Part shown: positions 641-60,200 of the stretch, one piece after another
Layout: every line of letters starts with the position of its first letter
Numbering within the stretch: position 1 is the stretch's first letter
Source of the DNA: Macrostomum lignano
Taxonomy: Eukaryota
DNA length: 64,000 nt
Assembly: GCA_002269645.1 (NCBI GenBank)
Contig: NIVC01002976.1
Span: forward strand, 62,001-126,000
Direction of reading: 5' to 3'
The notes under the pieces: generated by a model
Database searches by the model: none
What the model saw: only the letters and a program-made list of their open reading frames with translations
Told to the model about the DNA's origin: nothing
Translations under genes and position numbers: made by a program

Positions 641-6712
<6,072 letters not shown>

Positions 6713-9248: not shown

Positions 9249-12200
9249 ATGGCATCAAGCAATGATGCCGGCAGCACTGACCAACAAGGTGACGATGTAC
9301 CATTGCTGCGACATCCGCACATAGTTGTTAGCCAGAACACTGTTGATGCTGGCAGTGAGGATGCTGCAGAAAGTGCTGATGCCACACCAGAGTCGGCAGT
9401 CTTCGAGGAACCGTCGTCGCCATCAGCACCAAAACGATGGCGCTACGTGGAGAAGGAGATCCTTGAGACCGAACAAAGCTATCTTGCCGATATGTCCAAA
9501 CTTGCAGAGTCCTTCCTGATGCAGCCACTGGGCAAGGAGTTTCCCACAGAAAAGGTTTGTGAAGATCTACTGAAAATTGTCATTTAAAATCGCTTCAGTA
9601 GTGGTGATTTATCTCAGGATTGCACGGCTCAGACAAAAGTTACAATCGCTTCATTAATATCATGGGGTGATTTTTCCTCAACGTTCTATTAGAGTCTCAC
9701 CTAAATCATCTGAGAGTTGACCAAAAACTATCTAAAAGATGACCCCTAGACTATCCAGGAGCCCCCCCCCCCCTAGACTATCCAAGAGAACCCCCTAGCC
9801 TATCCATGAGAATCGCCCCTAGACTATCCAGGAGCCCCCCCCCCCTAGACTATCCAAGAGAACCCCCTAGCCTATCCATGAGAATCGGTCCTAGACTATA
9901 CATGAGAATCGACCCTACTCTATCCATGAAAATCGCCCCTAGACTAGTCATGAGAATCGCCCCTAGATTATCTATGAGAATCGGCTCTGCCGCTCTATAC
10001 TATCCATTAGAATCGCCCTAGCCTTTCAATGAGAAACGCCCCTAGACTATCCATGAGAATCGCCCCTAGACTACCCATGAGAATCGCCCCTAGACTACCC
10101 GTGAGAATCGCCCCTAGACTACCCATGAGAATCGCCCCTAGACTATCCATTAGAATCGCCCCTAGACTATCCATGAGAATCGCCCCTAGACTACCCATGA
10201 GAATCGCCCCTAGACTACCCATGAGAATCGCCCCTAGACTATCCATGAGAATCAAAAATACCTTCAACAACCCCTGCAAAGGTGCTGCTAAACCTGAACG
10301 AAGTATGCGAAGCGTCCCGCTCTCTGCTCGCCGACTTAGAAGCGGTTGCCAATGACAACACCGACGCATCAGGCAGCAGGGACATTGGCCAGGTGTTCAT
10401 CAAACACGGTGACAGAATCGCCACCGCCTACGTGCCGTTCTGCCGCGGCGTGAAGTCCGCGATCAAGAGGGCGGAGTCGCTGCAATCTCAAAGCTCGCCG
10501 CTGGCTGACAAGATCGCCGAACGGATGAACTCCTTGGCGCCCGACTCTGGGTTTCAATTGGACTCGTTCCTCATCAAACCGCTGCAACGGATCACTCGCT
10601 ACCCCCTGCTGCTCAGGGAGCTGCTCAAACAGGGCTGCCCTTATCCTCAATCTGTCAGTCAGGCTAGCGAGATCATCACCAACACGCTTAGAAGGGTCAA
10701 TGAGGAAGTTCGAGTGCACGAATTGCTGAGTCGGTTAGTTCTGAATATGCCTCTGGTGGGAATCATGTCTCAGTCACTGATGAGAATCATGCCTCAGTCA
10801 CTGATGAGAATCATGCCTCAGTCACGTCACTGATGAGAATCATGCCTCAGTCACACATGAGAATCATGCCTCAGTCACTGATGAGAATCATGCCTCAGTC
10901 ACTGATGAGAATCATGCCTCAGTCACGTCACTGATGAGAATCATGCCTCAGTCACACATGAGAATCATGCCTCAGTCACTGATGAGAATCATGTCTCAGT
11001 CACTGATGAGAATCATGCCTCAGTCACTGATGAGAATCATGCCTCAGTCACTGATGAGAATCATGCCTCAGTCACTGATGAGAATCATGCCTCAGTCACA
11101 CATGAGAATCATGCCTCAGTCACACATGAGAATCATGCTTCAGTCACACATGAGAATCATGCCTCAGTCACACATGAGAATCATGCCTCAGTCACAGATG
11201 AATCATGCCTCAGTCAGACATGAGAATCATGCCTCAGTCACTGATGAGAATCATGCCTCAGTCACACATGAGAATCATGCCTCAGTCACAGATGAGAATC
11301 ATGCCTCAGTCACTGATGAGAATCATGCCTCAGTCACTGATGAGAATCATGCCTCAGTCACACATGAGAATCATGCCTCAGTCACACATGAGAATCATGC
11401 CTCAGTCACACATGAGAATCATGCCTCAGTCACACATGAGAATCATGCTTCAGTCACACATGAGAATCATGCCTCAGTCACACATGAGAATCATGCCTCA
11501 GTCACAGCTGAGAATCATGCGTCAGTCACTGATGAGAATCATGCGTCAGTCACAGATGAGAATCATGCGTCAGTCAATGATGAGAATCATGCGTCAGTCA
11601 CAGATGAGAATCATGCCTCAGTCACAGATGAGAATCATGCCTCAGTCACAGATGAGAATCTTGCCTCAGTCACACATGAGAATTATGTCTCAGTCACATA
11701 TAGGAATCATGTCTCAGTCAATGATGAGAATCATGCCTCAATCACAGATGAGAATCATGCCTCAATCACACATGAGAATCATGCCTCAGTCACACATGAA
11801 AATCATGCCTCAGTCACACATGAGAATCATGCCTCAGTCACACATGAGAATCATGCCTCAGTCACACATGAGAATCATGCCTCAGTCACACATGAGAATC
11901 ATGCCTCAGTCACACATGAGAATCATGCCTCAGTCACACATGAGAATCATGCCTCAGTCACTGATGAGAATCATGCCTCAGTCACGTCACTGATGAGAAT
12001 CATGCCTCAGTCACACATGAGAATCATGCCTCAGTCACTGATGAGAATCATGCCTCAGTCACTGATGAGAATCATGCCTCAGTCACTGATGAGAATCATG
12101 CCTCAGTCACGTCACTGATGAGAATCATGCCTCAGTCACACATGAGAATCATGCCTCAGTCACTGATGAGAATCATGCCTCAGTCACTGATGAGAATCAT

Positions 12201-15200
12201 GCCTCAGTCACTGATGAGAATCATGCCTCAGTCACGTCACTGATGAGAATCATGCCTCAGTCACACATGAGAATCATGCCTCAGTCACTGATGAGAATCA
12301 TGTCTCAGTCACTGATGAGAATCATGCCTCAGTCACTGATGAGAATCATGCCTCAGTCACTGATGAGAATCATGCCTCAGTCACTGATGAGAATCATGCC
12401 TCAGTCACACATGAGAATCATGTCTCAGTCACACATGAGAATCATGCCTCAGTCACACATGAGAATCATGCCTCAGTCAGACATGAGAATCATGCCTCAG
12501 TCACAGATGAATCATGCCTCAGTCACAGATGAATCATGCCTCAGTCACAGATGAATCATGCCTCAGTCACAGATGAGAATCATGCCTCAGTCACATATGA
12601 GAATCATGCCTCACCCGCGGTTGCAGCTACCTGACCCCGGCTGACTGGCAGCAGCAGCAGCCGCAGCGAGCCCGCTGGGACAGCCTCGTCCACACTCTGG
12701 ACAAGAAAGGCGGCCGCTGGGGCACCTTCGTTCAGGAGCGCCTGTCCGGCCATGTTTCGGCCACTGCGGATCCAAAGCTGCGTCATCAGGTTGGCCGGTT
12801 CATCGCCTGCCGCCAGCTAGTCGACACGGTGCTTCAGCAGTGCGGCCGACTTGGCCGCAAGACCCAGCGCTGCGTTCAGTCTCTGGCCGCCCTGCACCGC
12901 CAGTTGGCCAACTTCTCTCCGGCCGTGGCCGCTGAAGCTCCGTGGCCGGAGGCCGCTCTCTTGGACGAAGGTGCCGACGGTCGATGGGGCCGATTCACTT
13001 CAGACGCTGAGAAGCTGGTGTTCGAGCCGTTGCGGAGTCTGCAGGACTGCTTCTCTGGTGAGCTGGGAGTGGCTGGGGGAGCTGAGGCCATGTGCAAGGA
13101 CCTTTGAATGCATGGACTGGAAGAGCAGTGCTGGCGGATCCTTGAAAAGTGTCTTTGAACTCCTGAGGATTGAGTAGATCTCCTGAACTACCTGAGGATT
13201 GAGTAGATCTCCTGAACTACCTGAGGATTGAGTAGATCTCCTGAACTACCTGAGGATTGAGTAGATCTCCTGAACTACCTGAGGATTTAGTAGACGTCTG
13301 AACTACCTGAGGATTGAGTAGATCTCCTGAACTACCTGAGGATTGAGTAGATCTCCTGAACTACCTGAGGATTTAGTAGATGTCCTGAACTACCTGAGGA
13401 TTTAGTAGATGTCCTGAACTACCTGAGGATTTAGTAGATGCCCTGAACTACCTGAGGATTGAGTAGATCTCCTAAACTACCTGAGGATTTAGTAGATGTC
13501 CTGAACTACCTGAGGATTTAGTAGATGTCCTGAACTACCTGAGGATTTAGTAGATGTCTGAACTAACTGAGGATTTAGTAGATGTCCTGAACTACCTGAG
13601 GATTTAGTAGATGTCTGAACTAACTGAGGATTGAGTAGATGTCCTGAACTAACTGAGGATTGAGTAGATGTCCTGAACTAACTGAGGATTTAGTAGATGT
13701 CTGAACTAACTGAGGATTTAGTAGATGTCTGAACTACCTGAGGATTTAGTAGATGTCTGAACTAACTGAGGATTTAGTAGATGTCCTGAACTACCTGAGG
13801 ATTTAGTAGATGTCCTGAACTACCTGAGGATTGAGTAGATGTCCTGAACTAACTGAGGATTTAGTAGATGTCTGAACTACCTGAGGATTTAGTAGATGTT
13901 TTGTAACCCGGGTCGGCTTGGGTGCCCAGTCCCGAGTACAATATATATTATATGTGATATAACAGGCGTTGTGACGCTCTGTCTGTACTTTTATGAATAC
14001 GACGAGCAGGCGTGGCGACGCTCTGCGATAATAATTCGATCCCTCTGGTGTTGTGACACTCAGAGTTCACGCTGCGGCTCGAGGTGTGGTGACACTCTCG
14101 AGTGCTTCTATTCTCTATACCGTAGGGCGTACGCAATATATATGGTAAACGGTACCGTACTACAGAAGCTATATGGTCTCCCGGCGTTATGACGCTCTGG
14201 CAAGAATTCGGCCTAGCAAGCTTCCCGGAAAGAAAGGACTCAAACAGCAGGCGGCTTACCAGTGGCCAGATGACTGTTCACCGTTTATTATTCGCAGGTC
14301 TCAAGCGCAGTTTCCGACTTCTTCTTAATTCTCCAAGACTCTTCTCAATTAGGCTATTGTGTTTCTTTTATCGAAGTAGCTAATGTTGCTGTTTCTTTTA
14401 TCAGGTCTCGCGCTTGCACTCTCTGAGCACACCAAAACACAAAAAGCACGCAGGTGGTGGGCAAGAGCCAGAGTCGCACCATAAATAGCACCCAAACCCT
14501 GGGGCAGACGGCCCCACCGGCTAAGCTCACCAAAACAAACCACGCCGGCCCAGCCAATCAAAACCCCGCCTAAGGGGGGAGGGGCTGCACCCGCGCCAAA
14601 GCTGGCCCGGCCGCAGCCAACCAGCCCTGAGCACGGGGCAGGGGCACGGCTGGGGAGGGGCACGCGCAAAGCCCGGCCGGGGCCAGACCCTGCCACGCCC
14701 GCCAACCCCCCCAACCAGCCCCAAAGTGCAACGCGCCCTGCCAACTGACAAGGGCGCATGCACTACAGATGTCTGAACTACCTGAGGATTTAGTAGATGT
14801 CTGAACTACCTGAGGATTTAGTAGATGCCCTGAACTACCTGAGGATTTAGTAGATGTCCTGAACTACCTGAGGATTGAGTAGATCTCCTGAACTACCTGA
14901 GGATTTAGTAGATGCCCTGAACTACCTGAGGATTTAGTAGATGTCTGAACTAACTGAGGATTTAGTAGATGTCCTGAACTACCTGAGAATTGAGTAGATG
15001 TCCTGAACTAACTGAGGATTTAGTAGATGTCTGAACTACCTGAGGATTTAGTAGATGTCTGAACTACCTGAGGATTTAGTAGATGTCTGAACTACCTGAG
15101 GATTGAGTAGATCTCCTAAACTACCTGAGGATTTAGTAGATGTCCTGAACTACCTGAGGATTGAGTAGATCTCCTGAACTACCTGAGGATTTAGTAGATG

Positions 15201-52013: not shown

Positions 52014-52734
52014 ATGCACAAAAACACAGTGTGCACAAACACACGGTGTGCACAAACACACGGTGTGCACAAACACACGGTGTGCACAAACACACGGTGT
52101 GCACAAACACGCGGTGTGCAAAAACACACGGTGTGCACAAACACACGGTGTGCACAAACACACGGTGTGCACAAACACACGGTGTGCACAAACACACAGT
52201 ATGCACAAACACACGGTATGCACAAACACACAGTATGCACAAACACACAGTATGCACAAACACACGGTGTGCACAAACACACGGTGTGCACAAACACACG
52301 GTGTGCACAAACACACAGTATGCACAAACACACGGTGTGCACAAACACACGGTGTGCACAAACACACGGTGTGCACAAACACACGGTGTGCACAAACACA
52401 CGGTGTGCACAAACACACGGTGTGCACAAACACACGGTGTGCACAAACACACGGTGTGCACAAACACACGGTATGCACAAACACACGGTATGCACAAACA
52501 CACGGTATGCACAAACACACGGTGTGCACAAACACACGGTATGCACAAACACACGGTATGCACAAACACGCGGTGTGCACAAACACACGGTGTGCACAAA
52601 CACACGGTGTGCACAAACACACGGTATGCACAAACACACGGTATGCACAAACACACGGTATGCACAAACACACGGTGTGCACAAACACACGGTATGCACA
52701 AACACACGGTATGCACAAACACGCGGTGTGCACA
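52014..52734. repeat. 17-bp satellite GCACAAACACACGGT(G/A)T, left of the retrotransposon
   Basis: Tandem array, interrupted at 52735. Confidence 0.98.
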
Positions 52735-52924
52735 AATGGCTAGTTTGCGCGGGCTGCGCTAACTGGCGTTTGTGTACGCTGCCCACCCCTGCCCCTCCCC
52801 GCGGCTTCCCCCCACCCCCGGTGTTGGGGGGGGGGGGTTGCGTGGCGGGGGTTTTATACCCCGCGGTTGGCTCTTTGGCCTCGCTGTCGCATTGCAATTG
52901 AAAAAATTTTTATGCTGCTGAGTC

Positions 52925-53956
52925 ATGTCACACGATTCTCTGACGGTACGAGAACTGCGCATGGCCTTGCGTGCTAAAGGCTTGCAAACCGTAGGCAACA
53001 AGCGCACCCTATTGGAGAGACTTCTGCAGTCTCAAGGCTCAGTGGACACGGGACCCATCGATGAATCGGACACCAGCAATCCATCGAGAAGGCGAGGGCC
53101 CGACGACGGGACGGCGGCGGTCGGCGGCGGCGAGGCGGCAGGAGGGACCCACGGGACTGGCGACCTGGACCGGGACCTGCGGGAGGCAGAGAAGCAGCTG
53201 CGCTTGCTGACAATTCGTCGGGACCAAGCGCGCCTGGAAGCCGAGATCCGTCAGCTGGACCGCCGTGCCGATGAGCCGCAGCGGCGACCTGCAAATGCCT
53301 CAGTGCCCGGTGAGTACTCAAGCCTTGAGGATTTAGTGCTGGGACCTACTGTCAGAGTGCCGGATGAGGTGCAGCAGGCGGGGCAGCAGCACCCGAATGC
53401 GTACCGGGTGCCGGAGTTCATCAGCGCTCGCAAGCGGCTGGCGCTGAACAAGTCAAGTCAAGCCAGCAAGCAGGCCGCCCTGGACAGCCTCTCGGTTGGC
53501 GACTGGATCACCGGAAACGCCAACGCGCTGATGCAGATGTTGAAGGACGGCAGACTCCTCGTCCTCCGTGATGGCGCTATCGACATGTCGGAGCTGCTGG
53601 AGTACCTGAAGCACACGGCAAAAATTGGCGACCTCCTTGATCTCGGATTCGACCGCGGCCGCGTTTTGCGCTATGATGATGAGTACAGAGCGCAGCACGC
53701 TGAGGCCGGCGCCTGGGACAGCTCGGTGACCGACCTGGGTCTGGTGGCGGCACACCTGATGGCTCCGAATCTTCAACTGCAGGCCGGCTCAGCGGGCAGG
53801 TCATCAGCAAAGCGACCGGTCTGCTTCGACTTCAACAAGGTGTCCGGCTGCCAGCGCAACCCGTGTCGTTTCGCACACAGTTGTAGGCGCTGCGGCCAGG
53901 CGCACTCGGAGGCCTCCTTCCACAGAGCGGAGGGCGGCCAGGCGGCAAAAAACTGA
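52925..53956 (+). CDS. ORF1 Gag-like protein: N-terminal SAP-like domain, coiled coil, C-terminal Cys/His knuckle
   Basis: LTVRELRMALRAKGLQTVGNKRTLLERL is SAP-like. CFDFNKVSGCQRNPCRFAHSCRRCGQAH is the Cys/His cluster. Confidence 0.88.
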   Translation: MSHDSLTVRELRMALRAKGLQTVGNKRTLLERLLQSQGSVDTGPIDESDTSNPSRRRGPDDGTAAVGGGEAAGGTHGTGDLDRDLREAEKQLRLLTIRRDQARLEAEIRQLDRRADEPQRRPANASVPGEYSSLEDLVLGPTVRVPDEVQQAGQQHPNAYRVPEFISARKRLALNKSSQASKQAALDSLSVGDWITGNANALMQMLKDGRLLVLRDGAIDMSELLEYLKHTAKIGDLLDLGFDRGRVLRYDDEYRAQHAEAGAWDSSVTDLGLVAAHLMAPNLQLQAGSAGRSSAKRPVCFDFNKVSGCQRNPCRFAHSCRRCGQAHSEASFHRAEGGQAAKN

Positions 53957-54044
53957 TGGACGGGGTTCAGCGGCAGGGGTCTCTTAACATCGAGTCGCCC
54001 GCCCCTGCCGCTGCTTCTGTCGAACCCCAAAAGGAGGGCGACTC
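53947..54044 (+). promoter_or_regulatory. Putative -1 programmed ribosomal frameshift signal (A AAA AAC + 8-nt spacer + pseudoknot)
   Basis: Heptamer at 53947-53953 is in the gag frame just before TGA. Complementary segments: 53962-67/54023-28, 53968-79/54002-13 and 53992-54000/54036-44. Confidence 0.72.
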
Positions 54045-55929
54045 AAGCGGGACCCTCTCCACCGACTTGCGCCTTGAAGCCTGGCGCCTCGAGCTGGCCG
54101 ACACGGAGATGCCAACGAAGCTCGCGCAGTTCGTTTTGAGCGGTGTGAAGGACGGTTTCCGCATCAGGAACGTCAGCAGTCCGGTGGACTCTGTCGAGCA
54201 GGAGAACTACGGCTCCATCGGTCAGCATCGAGTCGAGGTTCAGGCCCAAGTCCGCCGGGAACTGCAAGCTGGAAGATATCGCGTTAGCGCCAAGCCGACT
54301 ATTGTGAGCGCGCTGGGCGCCATTCCGAAGTCCGGGGGCGGCATCCGGCTCATCCATGACTGCAGTCAGCCCCAGGGTCGGGCCGTCAATGATTTGTTTG
54401 CTTGTCAGCAGAAGCTTCGGTTTTCTTCGGCGGCTGCCTTTGCTAGGAAGCTGCGCCAGGACATGTACATGTGTAAAGTTGACCTAAGCCAGGCCTACCG
54501 GTCTTGCGGCATTCACCCGGACGACCACTGCCTCACCGGTCTGAAGTTCACGTTCGAGGGCGAGGCGGAGCCGACCTACATGGTGGACACCCGGCTGCCG
54601 TTCGGAGCGGCAGCATCCGTGAGCAGCTTTTTCCAGATCAGCAACGCCATTCGGTTTATGATGCTCAAGCGCAGGTTCTTCAACTTCGAGGTCTACATGG
54701 ACGACTTCGGCTTCGCGGGTTCGCTGACTGAGTGCTGGCGCTTTTACAACAAGCTGACGCAGCTGCTGCAGAGCCTGGGCCTGACTGTCAACTGGAAGAA
54801 GTGCGTGCAGCCGACGCAGGAGATGTGCTTCCTGGGCATTCAGTTCAACACGCAGTCGGGGCTGATGAGTCTGCCAGAGACGAAGGTCGAGGAGCTGCAG
54901 GCCTGCCTTGACCTCTGCTGCACAAAGCGGCGGATCTCCAAGCACGAGTTGCAGAAGCTAGTGGGCAGGCTCAACTGGGCCTGTCAGGTGGTCTGCAACG
55001 GCCGGCCGTTTCTGCGAGACCTGATCGACCGCGTCAACGACTTGTCGAGCCCGAAGGATCGGCTGTTGGTGGATGGCCAGTTCAAGAGCGTCCTGAGCTG
55101 GTGGAAAGTTGCTCTGCGGCAGCAGCCAGGTCGCGAGCTCTGGCCTGCTGCCAGGAGGCCGGTTGCCATGGAGACGGACGCCTGTCTGGTGGGGGCAGCG
55201 GCTGTTCTGAGAGATCCGGCTGGTTCTGACTGGTGCTATCTGCAGTGGGAAGTCGACGCTGGGAGCGAGTTCAGCGATTGCTGCATCAACTACAAGGAGG
55301 CTGCCGCGGTGCTGCTGGCGTTGCTGCACTGGCGCCGTCAACTGCACAACTGCCGGATCGCTGTCTACTGCGACAATGCTGCAGCCTGCGCGATTATCAA
55401 CAAGGGGTCATCCAGGGAGCCCCGGCTGTTGCGGCTGCTGCAGACTGTTGCTCTGCTGTGCCTAAAGCAGAACATTGTGGTCACCGCCCACCATGTGCCC
55501 GGCCGGTTTCAGCTGTTTGCCGACGCCGCCTCCCGCCTGCATTGCCGGCAGGAGTTGCTGAATTTTCTGTTGCGAGCCTATGCAACCGCCTCTGTTTGCC
55601 CGCATGAATTTGCGGGACATGCGCTTAGCCCTGCCTCCGCCGCCTTTCTTTTTTTACAGGTCGCCTCCCTGGGTCTCTCGACGCTGCCGCCGCCAAACTG
55701 CTCCAGCAGGCCTATGCATCATCGTCCAAGAGGTCGCTGTCATCTGCTGTCCGCACCTGGCAACGCTTCTGCCGAGAGCGGCGGCTCGACCCACTCGGCT
55801 GTCGGGCGGAGGATCTCGCAAACTACGTCGGCCAGCTCGTGGACGGCCGGCTCAGCTCCTTCGGCAGCGTCCGCGTGCATATCAGCGCTCTGTCCGCCAG
55901 TTTCCGACTGGCGGGAGTGCCGGACCTGA
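53956..55929 (+). CDS. ORF2 reverse transcriptase + RNase H
   Basis: RT motifs KVDLSQAYR, RLPFG, YMDDF and FLGIQF. RNase H acidic residues in ETDAC, NYKEAAAV, YCDNAAA and FADAASR. The 3' ~270 nt overlap the YR frame. Confidence 0.95.
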   Translation: MDGVQRQGSLNIESPAPAAASVEPQKEGDSSGTLSTDLRLEAWRLELADTEMPTKLAQFVLSGVKDGFRIRNVSSPVDSVEQENYGSIGQHRVEVQAQVRRELQAGRYRVSAKPTIVSALGAIPKSGGGIRLIHDCSQPQGRAVNDLFACQQKLRFSSAAAFARKLRQDMYMCKVDLSQAYRSCGIHPDDHCLTGLKFTFEGEAEPTYMVDTRLPFGAAASVSSFFQISNAIRFMMLKRRFFNFEVYMDDFGFAGSLTECWRFYNKLTQLLQSLGLTVNWKKCVQPTQEMCFLGIQFNTQSGLMSLPETKVEELQACLDLCCTKRRISKHELQKLVGRLNWACQVVCNGRPFLRDLIDRVNDLSSPKDRLLVDGQFKSVLSWWKVALRQQPGRELWPAARRPVAMETDACLVGAAAVLRDPAGSDWCYLQWEVDAGSEFSDCCINYKEAAAVLLALLHWRRQLHNCRIAVYCDNAAACAIINKGSSREPRLLRLLQTVALLCLKQNIVVTAHHVPGRFQLFADAASRLHCRQELLNFLLRAYATASVCPHEFAGHALSPASAAFLFLQVASLGLSTLPPPNCSSRPMHHRPRGRCHLLSAPGNASAESGGSTHSAVGRRISQTTSASSWTAGSAPSAASACISALCPPVSDWRECRT

Positions 55930-56636
55930 CCAGGCACCCGCTGCTGCACCTGGTTCTGCGGGGAGCCAAGCGCGAGCTGGGGTCGGAGCCGAGTCGCAAG
56001 CTGCCGGTGTCGCCAGACCTTTTGTCGAGACTGCGGCTGCAAGTCGACAGCTCGAATCCTGTGCAGGCGGCCTGCTGGGCTGCGGTCATGTGCGCTTGGT
56101 GGGGGATGTTCAGGAAGTCCAGCCTGCTGCCGCGAGGGCGCGCCGATCCGCCAGTGCTGCGACTGAGCTCGCTGGCAAGATGCCCCGAAGGCCTGCTTCT
56201 GACGTCCAGCTTCGGGAAGACCAACCAGTACGGCCGGACGCATCGCGTGCTGCTGCCAGAGTTGACTTCGGGCCACCCGCTCTGTCCAGTGGCGGCACTG
56301 CGAGGCCACCTGCGCTGCAACCGGCTGAAGCGGCGGCAGCAGGGCCTGTTTTCATTCAGCAGTGGATCGTCCGGTCACGCATCTCTGACGTCCCGGAGGC
56401 TCGATGTACAGTTCAGGTCGTGGCTCGGCAAGGCGGGAGTTCCGGCGGCCGGGTTTTCTGTGCATAGCCTGCGGCGAGGCGCCGCCACCTGGGCGGCCCG
56501 GTGCGGCCTGTCAGTGCGGGAGATCCAGTGCGTGGGTGACTGGCGCAGCGATGCAGTGAGCGTCTACCTGTCCCGCGATGACACGGCTCTGCGTGCGGCG
56601 CGCAAGCTTGCTGTTGCGGCGCTTGACCAAACCTGA
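55660..56636 (+). CDS. ORF3 tyrosine recombinase (frame open from 55629; no upstream ATG; probably entered by splicing at 55660)
   Basis: Catalytic set present: FRKS (R), GKTNQ (K), HSLRR (HxxR), GDW (W) and VYL (Y). An N-terminal core-binding region YASSSKRSLSSAVRTWQRFC lies upstream of the listed GTG start. Confidence 0.92.
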
Positions 56637-57240
56637 CGTGTTTCGCGGTTTTTTTTTGAAGAAAGGTTTTGGGCTCCTTTTTTGTTTGCTTGTCCGCTTT
56701 TGCTTGCCTCTGCTTGGTCTGCTTTTGCTCTAGTCTGTTTTCTTGCTGCTTTTGGTGTTGGGGGGAGTGCATGGCAGCCTTCCCTGACCTCCTCGCTGTT
56801 CCTGCGCCATTTGCTGCTCTTGAGCTTGCTGCGTTCGTCTTCTGGGGTGGGCAGTGGGCACTAATGGCTAGTTTGCGCGGGATGCGCTAACTGGCGTTTG
56901 TGTACGCTGCCCACCCCTGCCCCTCCCCCGCGGCTTCCCCCACCCCCGGTGTTGGGGGGGGGGTTGCGTGGCGGGGGGTTTTATACCCCGCGGTTGGCTC
57001 TTTGGCCTCGCTGTCGCATTGCAATTGAAAAAAATTTTTTTTCGTATCCTGTCACTCTTTTAATCCTGCTTTGATCCGTTCTAACTGTTGTCAATAATGC
57101 TTGAATATTTTCTCGTAATCGGTCTGAAATATACGGGGGGGAGTGCATGGCAGCCTTCCCTGACCTCCTCGCTGTTCCTGCGCCATTTGCTGCTCTTGAG
57201 CTTGCTGCGTTCGTCTTCTGGGGTGGGCAGTGGGCACTAA

Positions 57241-60200
57241 CAAACGGTATGCACAAACACACGGTATGCACAAACACACGGTGTGCTCAAACACACGGTA
57301 TGCACAAACAAACGGTGTGCACAAACACACGGTATGCACAAACACACGGTGTGCACAAACACACGGTGTGCACAAACACATGGTGTGCACAAACACACGG
57401 TGTGCACAAACACACGGTATGCACAAACACACGGTGTGCACAAACACACGGTGTGCACAAACACACGGTATGCACAAACACACGGTGTGCACAAACACGC
57501 GGTGTGCACAAACACACGGTATGCACAAACACACGGTGTGCTCAAACACACGGTGTGCTCAAACACACGGTTTGCACAAACACACGGTATGCACAAACAC
57601 ACGGTGTGCTCAAATACACGGTGTGCACAAACACACGGTATGCACAAACACACGGTGTGCTCAAACACACGGTGTGCACAAACACACGGTGTGCACAAAC
57701 ACGCGGTGTGCACAAACACACGGTATGCACAAACACACGGTGTGCTCAAACACACGGTATGCACAAACACACGGTATGCACAAACACACGGTGTGCACAA
57801 ACACATGGTGTGCACAAACACACGGTGTGCACAAACACACGGTATGCACAAACACACGGTGTGCACAAACACACGGTGTGCACAAACACACGGTATGCAC
57901 AAACACACGGTGTGCACAAACACGCGGTGTGCACAAACACACGGTATGCACAAACACACGGTGTGCTCAAACACACGGTGTGCTCAAACACACGGTTTGC
58001 ACAAACACACGGTATGCACAAACACACGGTGTGCTCAAATACACGGTGTGCACAAACACACGGTGTGCACAAACACGCGGTATGCACAAACACACGGTGT
58101 GCACAAACACACGGTATGCACAAACACACGGTGTGCACAAACACACGGTGTGCACAAACAAACGGTATGCACAAACACATGGTGTGCACAAACACACGGT
58201 GTGCACAAACACGCGGTGTGCACAAACACACGGTGTGCACAAACAAACGGTATGCACAAACACACGGTGTGTACAAACACACGGTATGCACAAACACACG
58301 GTGTGCACAAACACACGGTGTGCACAAACACACGGTATGCACGAACACACGGTGTGCTCAAACACACGGTTTGCACAAACACACGGTGTGCACAAACACA
58401 CGGTGTGCACAAACACACGGTATGCACAAACACACGGTGTGCACAAACACACGGTGTGCACAAACACGCGGTGTGCACAAACACACGGTGTGCACAAACA
58501 AACGGTATGCACAAACACACGGTGTGTACAAACACACGGTATGCACAAACACACGGTGTGCACAAACACACGGTGTGTACAAACACACGGTGTGCACAAA
58601 CACACGGTGTGCACAAACACACGGTGTGCACAAACACGCGGTGTGCACAAACACACGGTGTGCACAAACACACGGTGTGCACAAACACACGGTGTGCACA
58701 AACAAACGGTATGCACAAACACATGGTGTGTACAAACACACAGTGTGCACAAAAACACGGTGTGCACAAACACACGGTGTGCACAAACACACGGTATGCA
58801 CGAACACACGGTGTGCTCAAACACACGGTTTGCACAAACACACGGTATGCACAAACACACGGTGTGCTCAAACACACGGTGTGCACAAACACACGGTGTG
58901 CACAAACACGCGGTATGCACAAACACGCGGTGTGCACAAACACACGGTATGCACAAACACACGGTGTGCACAAACACACGGTGTGCACAAACACACGGTA
59001 TGGACAAACACATGGTGTGCACAAACACACGGTGTGCACAAACACGCGGTGTGCACAAACACATGGTGTGCACAAACACACGGTGTGCTCAAACACACGG
59101 TGTGCTCAAACACACGGTGTGCACAAACACGCGGTGTGCACAAACACACGGTGTGCACAAACAAACGGTATGCACAAACACACGGTGTGTACAAACACAC
59201 GGTATGCACAAACACACGGTGTGCACAAACACACGGTGTGCACAAACACACGGTATGCACGAACACACGGTGTGCTCAAACACACGGTTTGCACAAACAC
59301 ACGGTGTGCACAAACACACGGTGTGCACAAACACACGGTATGCACAAACACACGGTGTGCACAAACACACGGTGTGCACAAACACGCGGTGTGCACAAAC
59401 ACACGGTGTGCACAAACAAACGGTATGCACAAACACACGGTGTGTACAAACACACGGTATGCACAAACACACGGTGTGCACAAACACACGGTGTGTACAA
59501 ACACACGGTGTGCACAAACACACGGTGTGCACAAACACACGGTGTGCACAAACACGCGGTGTGCACAAACACACGGTGTGCACAAACACACGGTGTGCAC
59601 AAACACACGGTGTGCACAAACAAACGGTATGCACAAACACATGGTGTGTACAAACACACGTGTGCACAAAAACACGGTGTGCACAAACACACGGTGTGCA
59701 CAAACACACGGTATGCACAACACACGGTGTGCTCAAACACACGGTTTGCACAAACACACGGTATGCACAAACACACGGTGTGCTCAAACACACGGTGTGC
59801 ACAAACACACGGTGTGCACAAACACGCGGTATGCACAAACACGCGGTGTGCACAAACACACGGTATGCACAAACACACGGTGTGCACAAACACACGGTGT
59901 GCACAAACACACGGTATGGACAAACACATGGTGTGCACAAACACACGGTGTGCACAAACACGCGGTGTGCACAAACACATGGTGTGCACAAACACACGGT
60001 GTGCACAAACACGCGGTGTGCACAAACACACGGTGTGCACAAACAAACGGTATGCAAAAACACACGGTGTGTACAAACGCACGGTATGCACAAACACACG
60101 GTATGCACAAACAAACGGTATGCACAAACACACGGTATGCACAAACACACGGTATGCACAAACACACGGTATGCACAAACACACGGTGTGCACAAACACA

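Follow-up and report, generated by a model that had tools for sequence, protein, structure and literature searches.

A putative programmed -1 ribosomal frameshift cassette at the gag/pol junction of a Ngaro-type tyrosine recombinase retrotransposon of Macrostomum lignano

Analysis of a 64,000-nucleotide (nt) stretch of the Macrostomum lignano genome (GenBank assembly GCA_002269645.1, contig NIVC01002976.1, positions 62,001 to 126,000 of the forward strand; hereafter the window) showed that a Ngaro-type tyrosine recombinase (YR) retrotransposon of the order DIRS is present at positions 52737-57240. The junction between its gag and pol genes carries a cassette which probably acts as a programmed -1 ribosomal frameshift signal, whereby a fraction of the ribosomes would produce a Gag-Pol fusion and the majority plain Gag. 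An earlier note on this DNA had described the cassette as a slippery heptamer followed by an H-type pseudoknot, and direct inspection showed that all coordinates and bases given there for the junction were exact. The actual shifting of ribosomes, its efficiency and which of the helices stimulate it are what we infer here. The features of the junction are as follows.

53947 to 53953, forward strand: slippery heptamer A_AAA_AAC (type X_XXY_YYZ), in gag phase with AAA and AAC as gag codons, and with TGA directly after it.
53962 to 54028, forward strand: stem 1, a bulged hairpin of 18 base pairs (bp) in total, with an outer helix of 6 bp and an inner helix of 12 bp.
53992 to 54044, forward strand: candidate pseudoknot helix (stem 2), in which 53992-54000 pairs with 54036-54044 over 9 bp.

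The gag gene ends with GCA AAA AAC TGA, the TGA stop codon being at 53954-53956, and an ATG at 53956-53958 overlaps this stop as TGATG. The pol frame (open reading frame 2, ORF2) is -1 relative to gag and is open across the heptamer and for 60 nt upstream of it. A -1 slip at the in-phase A_AAA_AAC enters the ORF2 frame, as the note had proposed. In the proposed mechanism, the ribosome would run into the foot of a GC-rich helix, located 8 nt downstream, while AAA occupies the P site and AAC the A site. This long helix, probably locked into a pseudoknot by pairing of its loop with a downstream segment, would resist unwinding; both tRNAs would re-pair one base back (on AAA and AAA) and translation would continue beyond the gag stop in the -1 frame. 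On eukaryotic ribosomes, A_AAA_AAC ranks with the heptamers most prone to shifting (PMC5009743).

Stem 1 was found to consist of two pairings. The outer helix pairs GGGGTT (53962-53967) with AACCCC (54023-54028) after an 8-nt spacer from the heptamer, and the inner helix pairs CAGCGGCAGGGG (53968-53979) with CCCCTGCCGCTG (54002-54013) in 12 perfect pairs, with a 9-nt bulge at 54014-54022 and a 22-nt loop at 53980-54001. The hairpin region 53960-54030 produced a minimum free energy (MFE) of -38.3 kcal/mol compared to -22.4 +/- 2.9 kcal/mol for dinucleotide shuffles (z = -5.4), and none of 200 shuffles was as good. In addition, the 75-nt segment 3' of the heptamer showed a z of -4.45, whereas the values of ten control segments within the element were all at least -0.76.

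For stem 2, the loop sequence GAGTCGCCC (53992-54000) was confirmed as the exact reverse complement of GGGCGACTC (54036-54044). One nucleotide (54001) separates stem 2 from the 3' arm of stem 1, and the 3' arm of stem 2 follows stem 1 after a stretch of 7 nt (54029-54035). A perfect complement of at least 9 nt between the loop and the downstream segment was present in 0.3% of shuffles, while the stem 2 duplex energy of -20.3 kcal/mol was reached in 1% of shuffles, with p = 0.005 on re-test.

A total of 89 related loci were collected, of which L001-L006 and L087-L089 were obtained by exact-protein look-up and L007-L086 from one metagenome scan. Hundreds of ORF2 homologues were present in metagenomes and read-archive assemblies, and a protein-pattern scan of a bacterial and archaeal genome collection produced no ORF2 relative. 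For Gag, single-sequence and profile searches produced only five relatives in all, and an exact-sequence look-up of the window Gag in the protein collection was without a match. A further 240 loci were returned by DNA-pattern scans of viral and genome contigs for a heptamer, TGA and stem; tblastn identified no gag or pol relative in any of them, and these were rejected as chance matches to a pattern which was too loose.

The closest relative of the window element is the L001 family, with 66% Pol and 59% Gag identity, followed by L005, L089, L002 and L003 at about 45-53%. Logan runs SRR31628392, SRR31628403 and SRR31628425 and JGI metagenome 3300040801 are the sources of the closest relatives. 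At the junction, L001, L087 and L088 do not differ; the independent members of the close clade were therefore taken as the window element, the L001 family, L005 and L089. With only five Gag relatives available, the close clade stays at these four independent sequences.

The gag/pol junction was classified in 52 loci including the window element, of which 19 have pol in the -1 frame, 23 have gag and pol in the same frame with exactly one stop at the boundary, and 10 have pol in the +1 frame. In the -1 class, the 18 loci other than the window element showed 30-66% Pol identity. An in-phase AAAAAAC was found inside the gag/pol overlap of 12 of the 19 -1 loci, window element included. Counted by codon, there were 12 occurrences among the 487 codons of the overlaps, compared to a single one among the 5,794 gag codons elsewhere (Fisher p = 5e-13). 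L004 and L089 are two extra elements with an in-phase A_AAA_AAC, and in both the stop follows directly after the heptamer as it does in the window. L044 has G_GGA_AAC and L073 has A_AAA_AAG, both of which are legal tandem-slip sites. The distance from heptamer to gag stop ranged from 0 to 36 nt. Overall, the slippery heptamer was conserved down to about 30-40% Pol identity, in contrast to the lack of conservation among related elements which the note had named as a refutation. The other two classes were composed as follows.

In-frame single stop at the gag/pol boundary, 23 loci: L002, L003, L006, L009, L011, L018, L021, L022, L026, L028, L029, L032, L034, L038, L051-L053, L057, L062, L064, L071, L074 and L083.
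pol in the +1 frame, 10 loci: L023, L024, L025, L030, L035, L040, L047, L067, L075 and L079.

TGA followed by C and TAG followed by G are leaky stop contexts. In a simple tally, the base after the in-frame stop was C in 10 of 14 TGA cases and G in all nine TAG cases. The in-frame-stop loci have the arrangement which would be expected for stop-codon readthrough. Among the pol +1 loci, nine of the ten have long overlaps. A rough neighbour-joining tree of the Pol segment showed that -1 and in-frame-stop loci are interleaved throughout; for example, L002 and L003, which have the stop, are sisters of L005, L001 and the window element, which have the frameshift arrangement. Seven of the ten pol +1 elements fell in one tree cluster, and this arrangement therefore looks like a heritable third one and not like decay.

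Comparison of the window element with the L001 family showed that the pairings are kept while the sequence changes. In the outer helix, GGGGTT/AACCCC is replaced by GGGGCT/AGCCCC, a change from U-A to C-G. In stem 2, GAGTCGCCC/GGGCGACTC is replaced by AGCCACC/GGTGGCT, with two pairs changed on both sides and two end pairs lost. For these stem 2 compensations, nonsynonymous substitutions were matched with nonsynonymous and synonymous with synonymous, which indicates that the pairing is kept while the peptide drifts. A three-sequence alignment of the window element, L001 and L005 contained six double-sided pair changes (three in the outer helix, one in the inner helix and two in stem 2) compared to 2.3 +/- 1.1 in shuffles, none of 500 of which reached this number, and 0-2 in slid controls. 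In the same alignment, 86% of the cells were paired compared to 30-52% in slid controls. Covariation in homologous elements, which the note had named as a further check, was accordingly found in this alignment, and stem 2 was found in all four clade members.

In a four-sequence alignment, MAFFT put the 3' arms of L005 and L089 out of register; the sequences were therefore tested one by one with explicit definitions of the arms, and no pairs were counted on that alignment. An automatic MFE-based definition of stem 1 blurred the loop boundaries and was also replaced by explicit arms. In all four members, the inner stem starts 14-16 nt past the heptamer and the 3' part of the loop pairs with a segment starting 7-13 nt past the end of the hairpin, with stem 2 sequences that are all different. 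L089 has a stem of 9 + 4 bp, a 21-nt loop and a 1-nt junction, and its stem 2 is formed by the last eight bases but one of the loop (AGTTGCCA) with TGGCAACT, 8 nt past the stem; compared to the window, it showed the same topology and nearly equal loop lengths with an unrelated stem 2 sequence. The loop/downstream duplex energies for the window, L001, L005 and L089 were -20.3, -20.7, -20.7 and -16.5 kcal/mol, with shuffle p values of 0.005, 0.005, 0.07 and 0.007, respectively (Fisher combined p = 1.4e-5). In the window, L001 and L089, loop 1 (L1) measured 11-12 nt, with a junction of 1-3 nt. Finally, two-layer folding recovered the loop-downstream helix in all three sequences tested with it (window, L001 and L005).

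Several findings weigh against this interpretation of the cassette. The nested MFE fold, which is incapable of a pseudoknot, puts the downstream arm of stem 2 into a local hairpin, so that, in this sequence taken by itself, stem 2 has to compete with one other option. A complete stem 1 of 18 bp, outer helix included, would leave only 7 nt to reach stem 2, possibly too few on steric grounds; if the inner 12-bp stem is formed alone, the connector is 22 nt and the spacer becomes 14 nt, longer than the usual 5-9 nt. The specific hairpin and pseudoknot were found in only four independent sequences. Among more distant relatives with the same heptamer, nested structures were not always unusually stable (8 of 15 had z > -1), so that the stimulator either is not uniform or is missed by nested folding; L004 has a different, very long stem. 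In addition, the window element and L001 have an ATG right at the gag stop, so that some independent or re-initiated synthesis of Pol may occur. Because both the stem 1 helices and stem 2 covary, it would follow either that they alternate or that the bulge lets the structure bend. The pairings of the H-type pseudoknot claimed in the note are exact, and they recur and covary in relatives, which makes it a candidate pseudoknot; the structure is not a compact one like that of mouse mammary tumour virus (MMTV), having a long bulged stem (6 + 12 bp) and a second helix of 9 bp.

The same nested fold, which favours the local downstream hairpin over stem 2, and the 7-nt connector, which looks short with the outer helix formed, also speak for the idea that frameshifting occurs with the long hairpin as its sole stimulator, the loop-downstream complementarity being unformed or serving RNA packaging or dimerisation. 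The stem 2 of L005, which taken alone is only marginally beyond chance (p = 0.07), points the same way. This idea was judged unlikely, given that a loop-to-downstream helix in the same topological position and with different sequences is present in all four clade members (combined p as above), that two stem 2 pairs differ on both sides when the window is compared with L001, and that loop lengths are nearly constant across the window, L001 and L089.

Separate production of Pol, by termination-reinitiation at TGATG or by initiation at ATG 53956 with the heptamer and structure incidental, appeared very improbable. The note had offered termination-reinitiation as its own alternative on the basis of the overlapping stop and start, and this overlap is indeed present in the window element and the L001 family. 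However, it is not conserved beyond them, the corresponding sequences being TGACGG in L005, TGACCG in L089 and TAGATT in L004, and 10 of 15 -1-class elements have no pol-frame ATG between the opening of the frame and the first conserved Pol motif. The conserved feature is the heptamer and not the stop/start layout, since the heptamer may lie up to 36 nt upstream of the stop. As most relatives have no ATG for pol, the TGATG overlap is best regarded as incidental, and pol in this clade would generally be unable to initiate alone.

A frame change at the RNA level, in which polymerase stuttering on the six-A run adds one A to some transcripts, can be set aside as most improbable: the run is present in the window element and in most -1-class relatives, but stuttering is blind to phase and to the next base whereas all 12 overlap occurrences of the run are in gag phase with a C after them, the G_GGA_AAC of L044 has only three A's, six A's are short for slippage by a cellular polymerase, and stuttering needs no conserved, covarying downstream structure at a spacing typical of frameshifting.

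A programmed -1 frameshift at A_AAA_AAC, giving the retrovirus-like Gag-Pol fusion that the note had read from the junction, is supported by the enrichment of the heptamer, by the recurrence of the hairpin and stem 2, and by a pol which mostly lacks a start codon of its own. Given that the slippery site and the RNA pairings are retained among relatives, a Gag-Pol fusion like that of retroviruses is probably produced in the Ngaro element class, and the sister elements with an in-frame stop would reach the same end by another recoding route.

Comparison with known systems showed that A_AAA_AAC is the gag-pro or gag-pol site of MMTV, intracisternal A-particles (IAPs), bovine leukaemia virus (BLV), human T-cell leukaemia viruses (HTLVs), bovine immunodeficiency virus (BIV), Jembrana disease virus (JDV) and equine infectious anaemia virus (EIAV), with spacers of 6-9 nt, a stem 1 of 5-12 bp and a stem 2 of 5-7 bp at these AAAAAAC sites (PMC3835772, Table 1). 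The putative window cassette resembles these in its heptamer, its phase and pol in the -1 frame, in a candidate stimulator 8 nt downstream compared to 6-9 nt, and in its predicted H-type topology; its proposed purpose, the setting of the Gag to Gag-Pol ratio, would also be the same. In contrast, the host element is a YR retrotransposon without a protease or a DDE integrase, and its gag stop is directly after the heptamer. Stem 1 has 12 bp and a 6-bp outer helix across a 9-nt bulge compared to 5 bp in MMTV, a length closer to the 11-12 bp predicted for BIV and JDV, and L1 is 12 nt whereas most retroviral examples have 1-2 nt.

In some retroviruses, ribosomes read through an in-frame gag/pol stop, aided by a pseudoknot that lies downstream of it (PMC3835772). 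The sister elements with a single boundary stop (L002, L003, L006 and 20 more) resemble this type, of which Moloney murine leukaemia virus (Mo-MuLV) is the example. Unlike in that type, pol of the window element is in the -1 frame, and readthrough therefore cannot serve it.

For retrotransposons with long terminal repeats (LTRs), a 2003 survey of -1 gag/pol sites, as summarised in PMC5009743, reported pol in the -1 frame with a tandem-slip heptamer in the overlap. Going by that summary, the bioinformatic inference was of the same kind as that made here, whereas those studied here are members of the YR (DIRS) order. In the 300,000 characters examined of the 2016 survey of frameshifting (Atkins et al., PMC5009743), DIRS, Ngaro and tyrosine recombinase do not occur. 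The DIRS, Ngaro and VIPER literature that was searched mentions overlapping or frameshifted ORFs and contains no slippery site or pseudoknot. A programmed frameshift was conjectured by Poulter and Butler (2015), as quoted in PMC13003380, at the overlap of the reverse transcriptase/RNase H (RT/RH) and YR frames of Ngaro elements. The quoted conjecture concerns the same superfamily and the same class of mechanism in a -1 overlap; it differs in that it refers to the RT/RH-YR overlap and not to gag/pol, and the quoted lines name no heptamer or structure, while the full review may say more on gag/pol. The statement in the note that such a fusion had not been shown in this element class is therefore fair for experiments, but frameshifting had already been conjectured for the Ngaro RT/YR overlap in the lines quoted in PMC13003380.

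Contrary to that quoted conjecture, the present survey showed no conserved slippery site at the RT/RH-YR overlap and did show one at gag/pol. An in-phase heptamer of any kind was found in only 3 of 26 -1 overlaps between pol and YR, which is no enrichment; this overlap served as an internal control for the gag/pol junction. From 55629 onwards the YR frame is both open and conserved, and no ATG precedes the conserved N-terminal domain. An in-phase U_UUU_UUA at 55650-55656 was considered as a second frameshift site for YR and was rejected, as even the L001/L087 family, at 66% identity, lacks it and the clade as a whole has few heptamers at this junction.

A polypyrimidine tract with YAG/R was found exactly at the start of YR homology in 28 of 40 loci compared to 12% of control segments; in the window the AG is at 55658-55659. 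The codon phase of this YAG/R was identical in 27 of the 28, whatever the frame relation of pol and YR. These positions have the look of a conserved 3' splice acceptor, and YR may be expressed from a spliced RNA and not by frameshifting. A brief look for a phase-compatible splice donor near the start of gag in the window and L087 gave nothing convincing.

The element and its parts are given below.

52737 to 57240, forward strand: complete Ngaro-type YR retrotransposon of 4,504 nt with both termini read, the sole copy in the window by self-BLAST.
52737 to 52911, forward strand: split direct repeat A1, 96% identical to A2 over 177 aligned positions.
52925 to 53956, forward strand: gag (ORF1), 343 amino acids (aa), with an N-terminal SAP domain, a C-terminal Cys/His knuckle and zero internal stops; aligned with the Gag of relatives.
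53887 to 55929, forward strand: pol frame (RT and RNase H), -1 relative to gag, with ATG at 53956, stop at 55927-55929 and zero internal stops.
55629 to 56636, forward strand: tyrosine recombinase (YR) frame (ORF3), -1 relative to pol, with a 301-nt overlap with the pol tail and zero internal stops.
56760 to 56864, forward strand: split direct repeat B1, 100% identical to B2 over 105 nt.
56865 to 57038, forward strand: split direct repeat A2, partner of A1.
57136 to 57240, forward strand: split direct repeat B2, partner of B1 and right end of the element.

The mismatches between A1 and A2 are in and around homopolymer runs of C and G, and a 97-nt unique segment separates A2 from B2. The repeat order A1-[ORFs]-B1-A2-B2 is that of split direct repeats and not of inverted terminal repeats or LTRs, which identifies the Ngaro architecture. 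Pfam searches showed a SAP domain at 52937-53029 in the Gag N-terminus (E = 5.7e-7), which is also present in the L001 family and L002, and RVT_1 (E = 9.7e-14) and RT_RNaseH (E = 1.9e-5) in ORF2. ORF2 was 66% identical to P0001 across 100% of its length. For ORF3, the Phage_integrase match was weak and below the cutoff (E = 1.8e-4), and the YR frame is conserved in comparison with L087. The assignment to YR retrotransposons made in the note agrees with these domains and with the split direct repeats. No methyltransferase, protease or DDE integrase was found by Pfam in the ORFs of the element. None of the genes is broken, with zero stops, disruptive frameshifts or indels compared to the 66%-identical relative, and the two frame changes between genes, which are common to relatives, appear to be part of the design.

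Two other reading frames were observed. An upstream ATG at 52912, 13 nt 5' of the gag ATG at 52925 and in another frame, has no counterpart in L087. A third-frame ORF of 295 aa at 55580-56467, which shares its sequence with the pol tail and the YR gene, was without a Pfam match; stops interrupt the corresponding frame in L087, and the ORF is most likely a by-product of high G+C.

The element interrupts an array of a 17-bp satellite, which is found at 52015-52736 and resumes at about 57230-57241 through 64000. A target-site duplication was absent at the insertion point in the satellite (52725-52745 and 57230-57250). A likeness was observed between the internal B1/A2 junction (56855-56870), GGGCACTAA/TGGCTAG, and the satellite insertion point, GTGCACAAA/CA..., which have GCAC.AA in common; this would fit recombinase-mediated integration of a circular intermediate at short homology. 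The SAP domain of Gag, a DNA/chromatin-binding motif, may bear on target choice; in the Ngaros of Cafeteria, ORF1 has been linked to integration-site preference (PMC8547959).

Elsewhere, positions 1-52000 of the window are an unusually dense patchwork of approximately 20 distinct arrays of micro- and minisatellites, which are unrelated to one another and have periods of 2 to ~94 nt, such as ATCT x467 at 2802-4666 and a 24-mer x76 at 10760-12613, with no obvious genes. Rfam produced nothing at gathering threshold anywhere in the window.

The mechanism proposed here is canonical and not new. The new part would be the element class, for which the junction offers a supported instance and a clade-wide pattern in YR retrotransposons. 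Recoding at this position is what specialists in retroelements would expect. To our knowledge, the YR retrotransposons (DIRS, Ngaro, PAT and VIPER) are the least understood retroelement order, and the expression of their overlapping ORFs is essentially conjecture. A wider and more tentative picture, which we consider possible but somewhat doubtful, is that the large and mostly marine-metagenome Ngaro clade has a full retrovirus-like programme, in which recoding switched repeatedly between -1 frameshifting at A_AAA_AAC and readthrough, with '+1' in one subclade, and in which YR would be produced from a spliced subgenomic RNA and not by frameshifting.

Overall, the sequence-level evidence suggests that the Ngaro gag/pol junction bears the same recoding signals as that of retroviruses. 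Annotators would gain a rule for calling Gag-Pol in Ngaro elements, and researchers on recoding a new and diverse set of natural stimulator structures. Finally, comparisons between YR elements on the one hand and LTR elements and retroviruses on the other would gain a shared trait.

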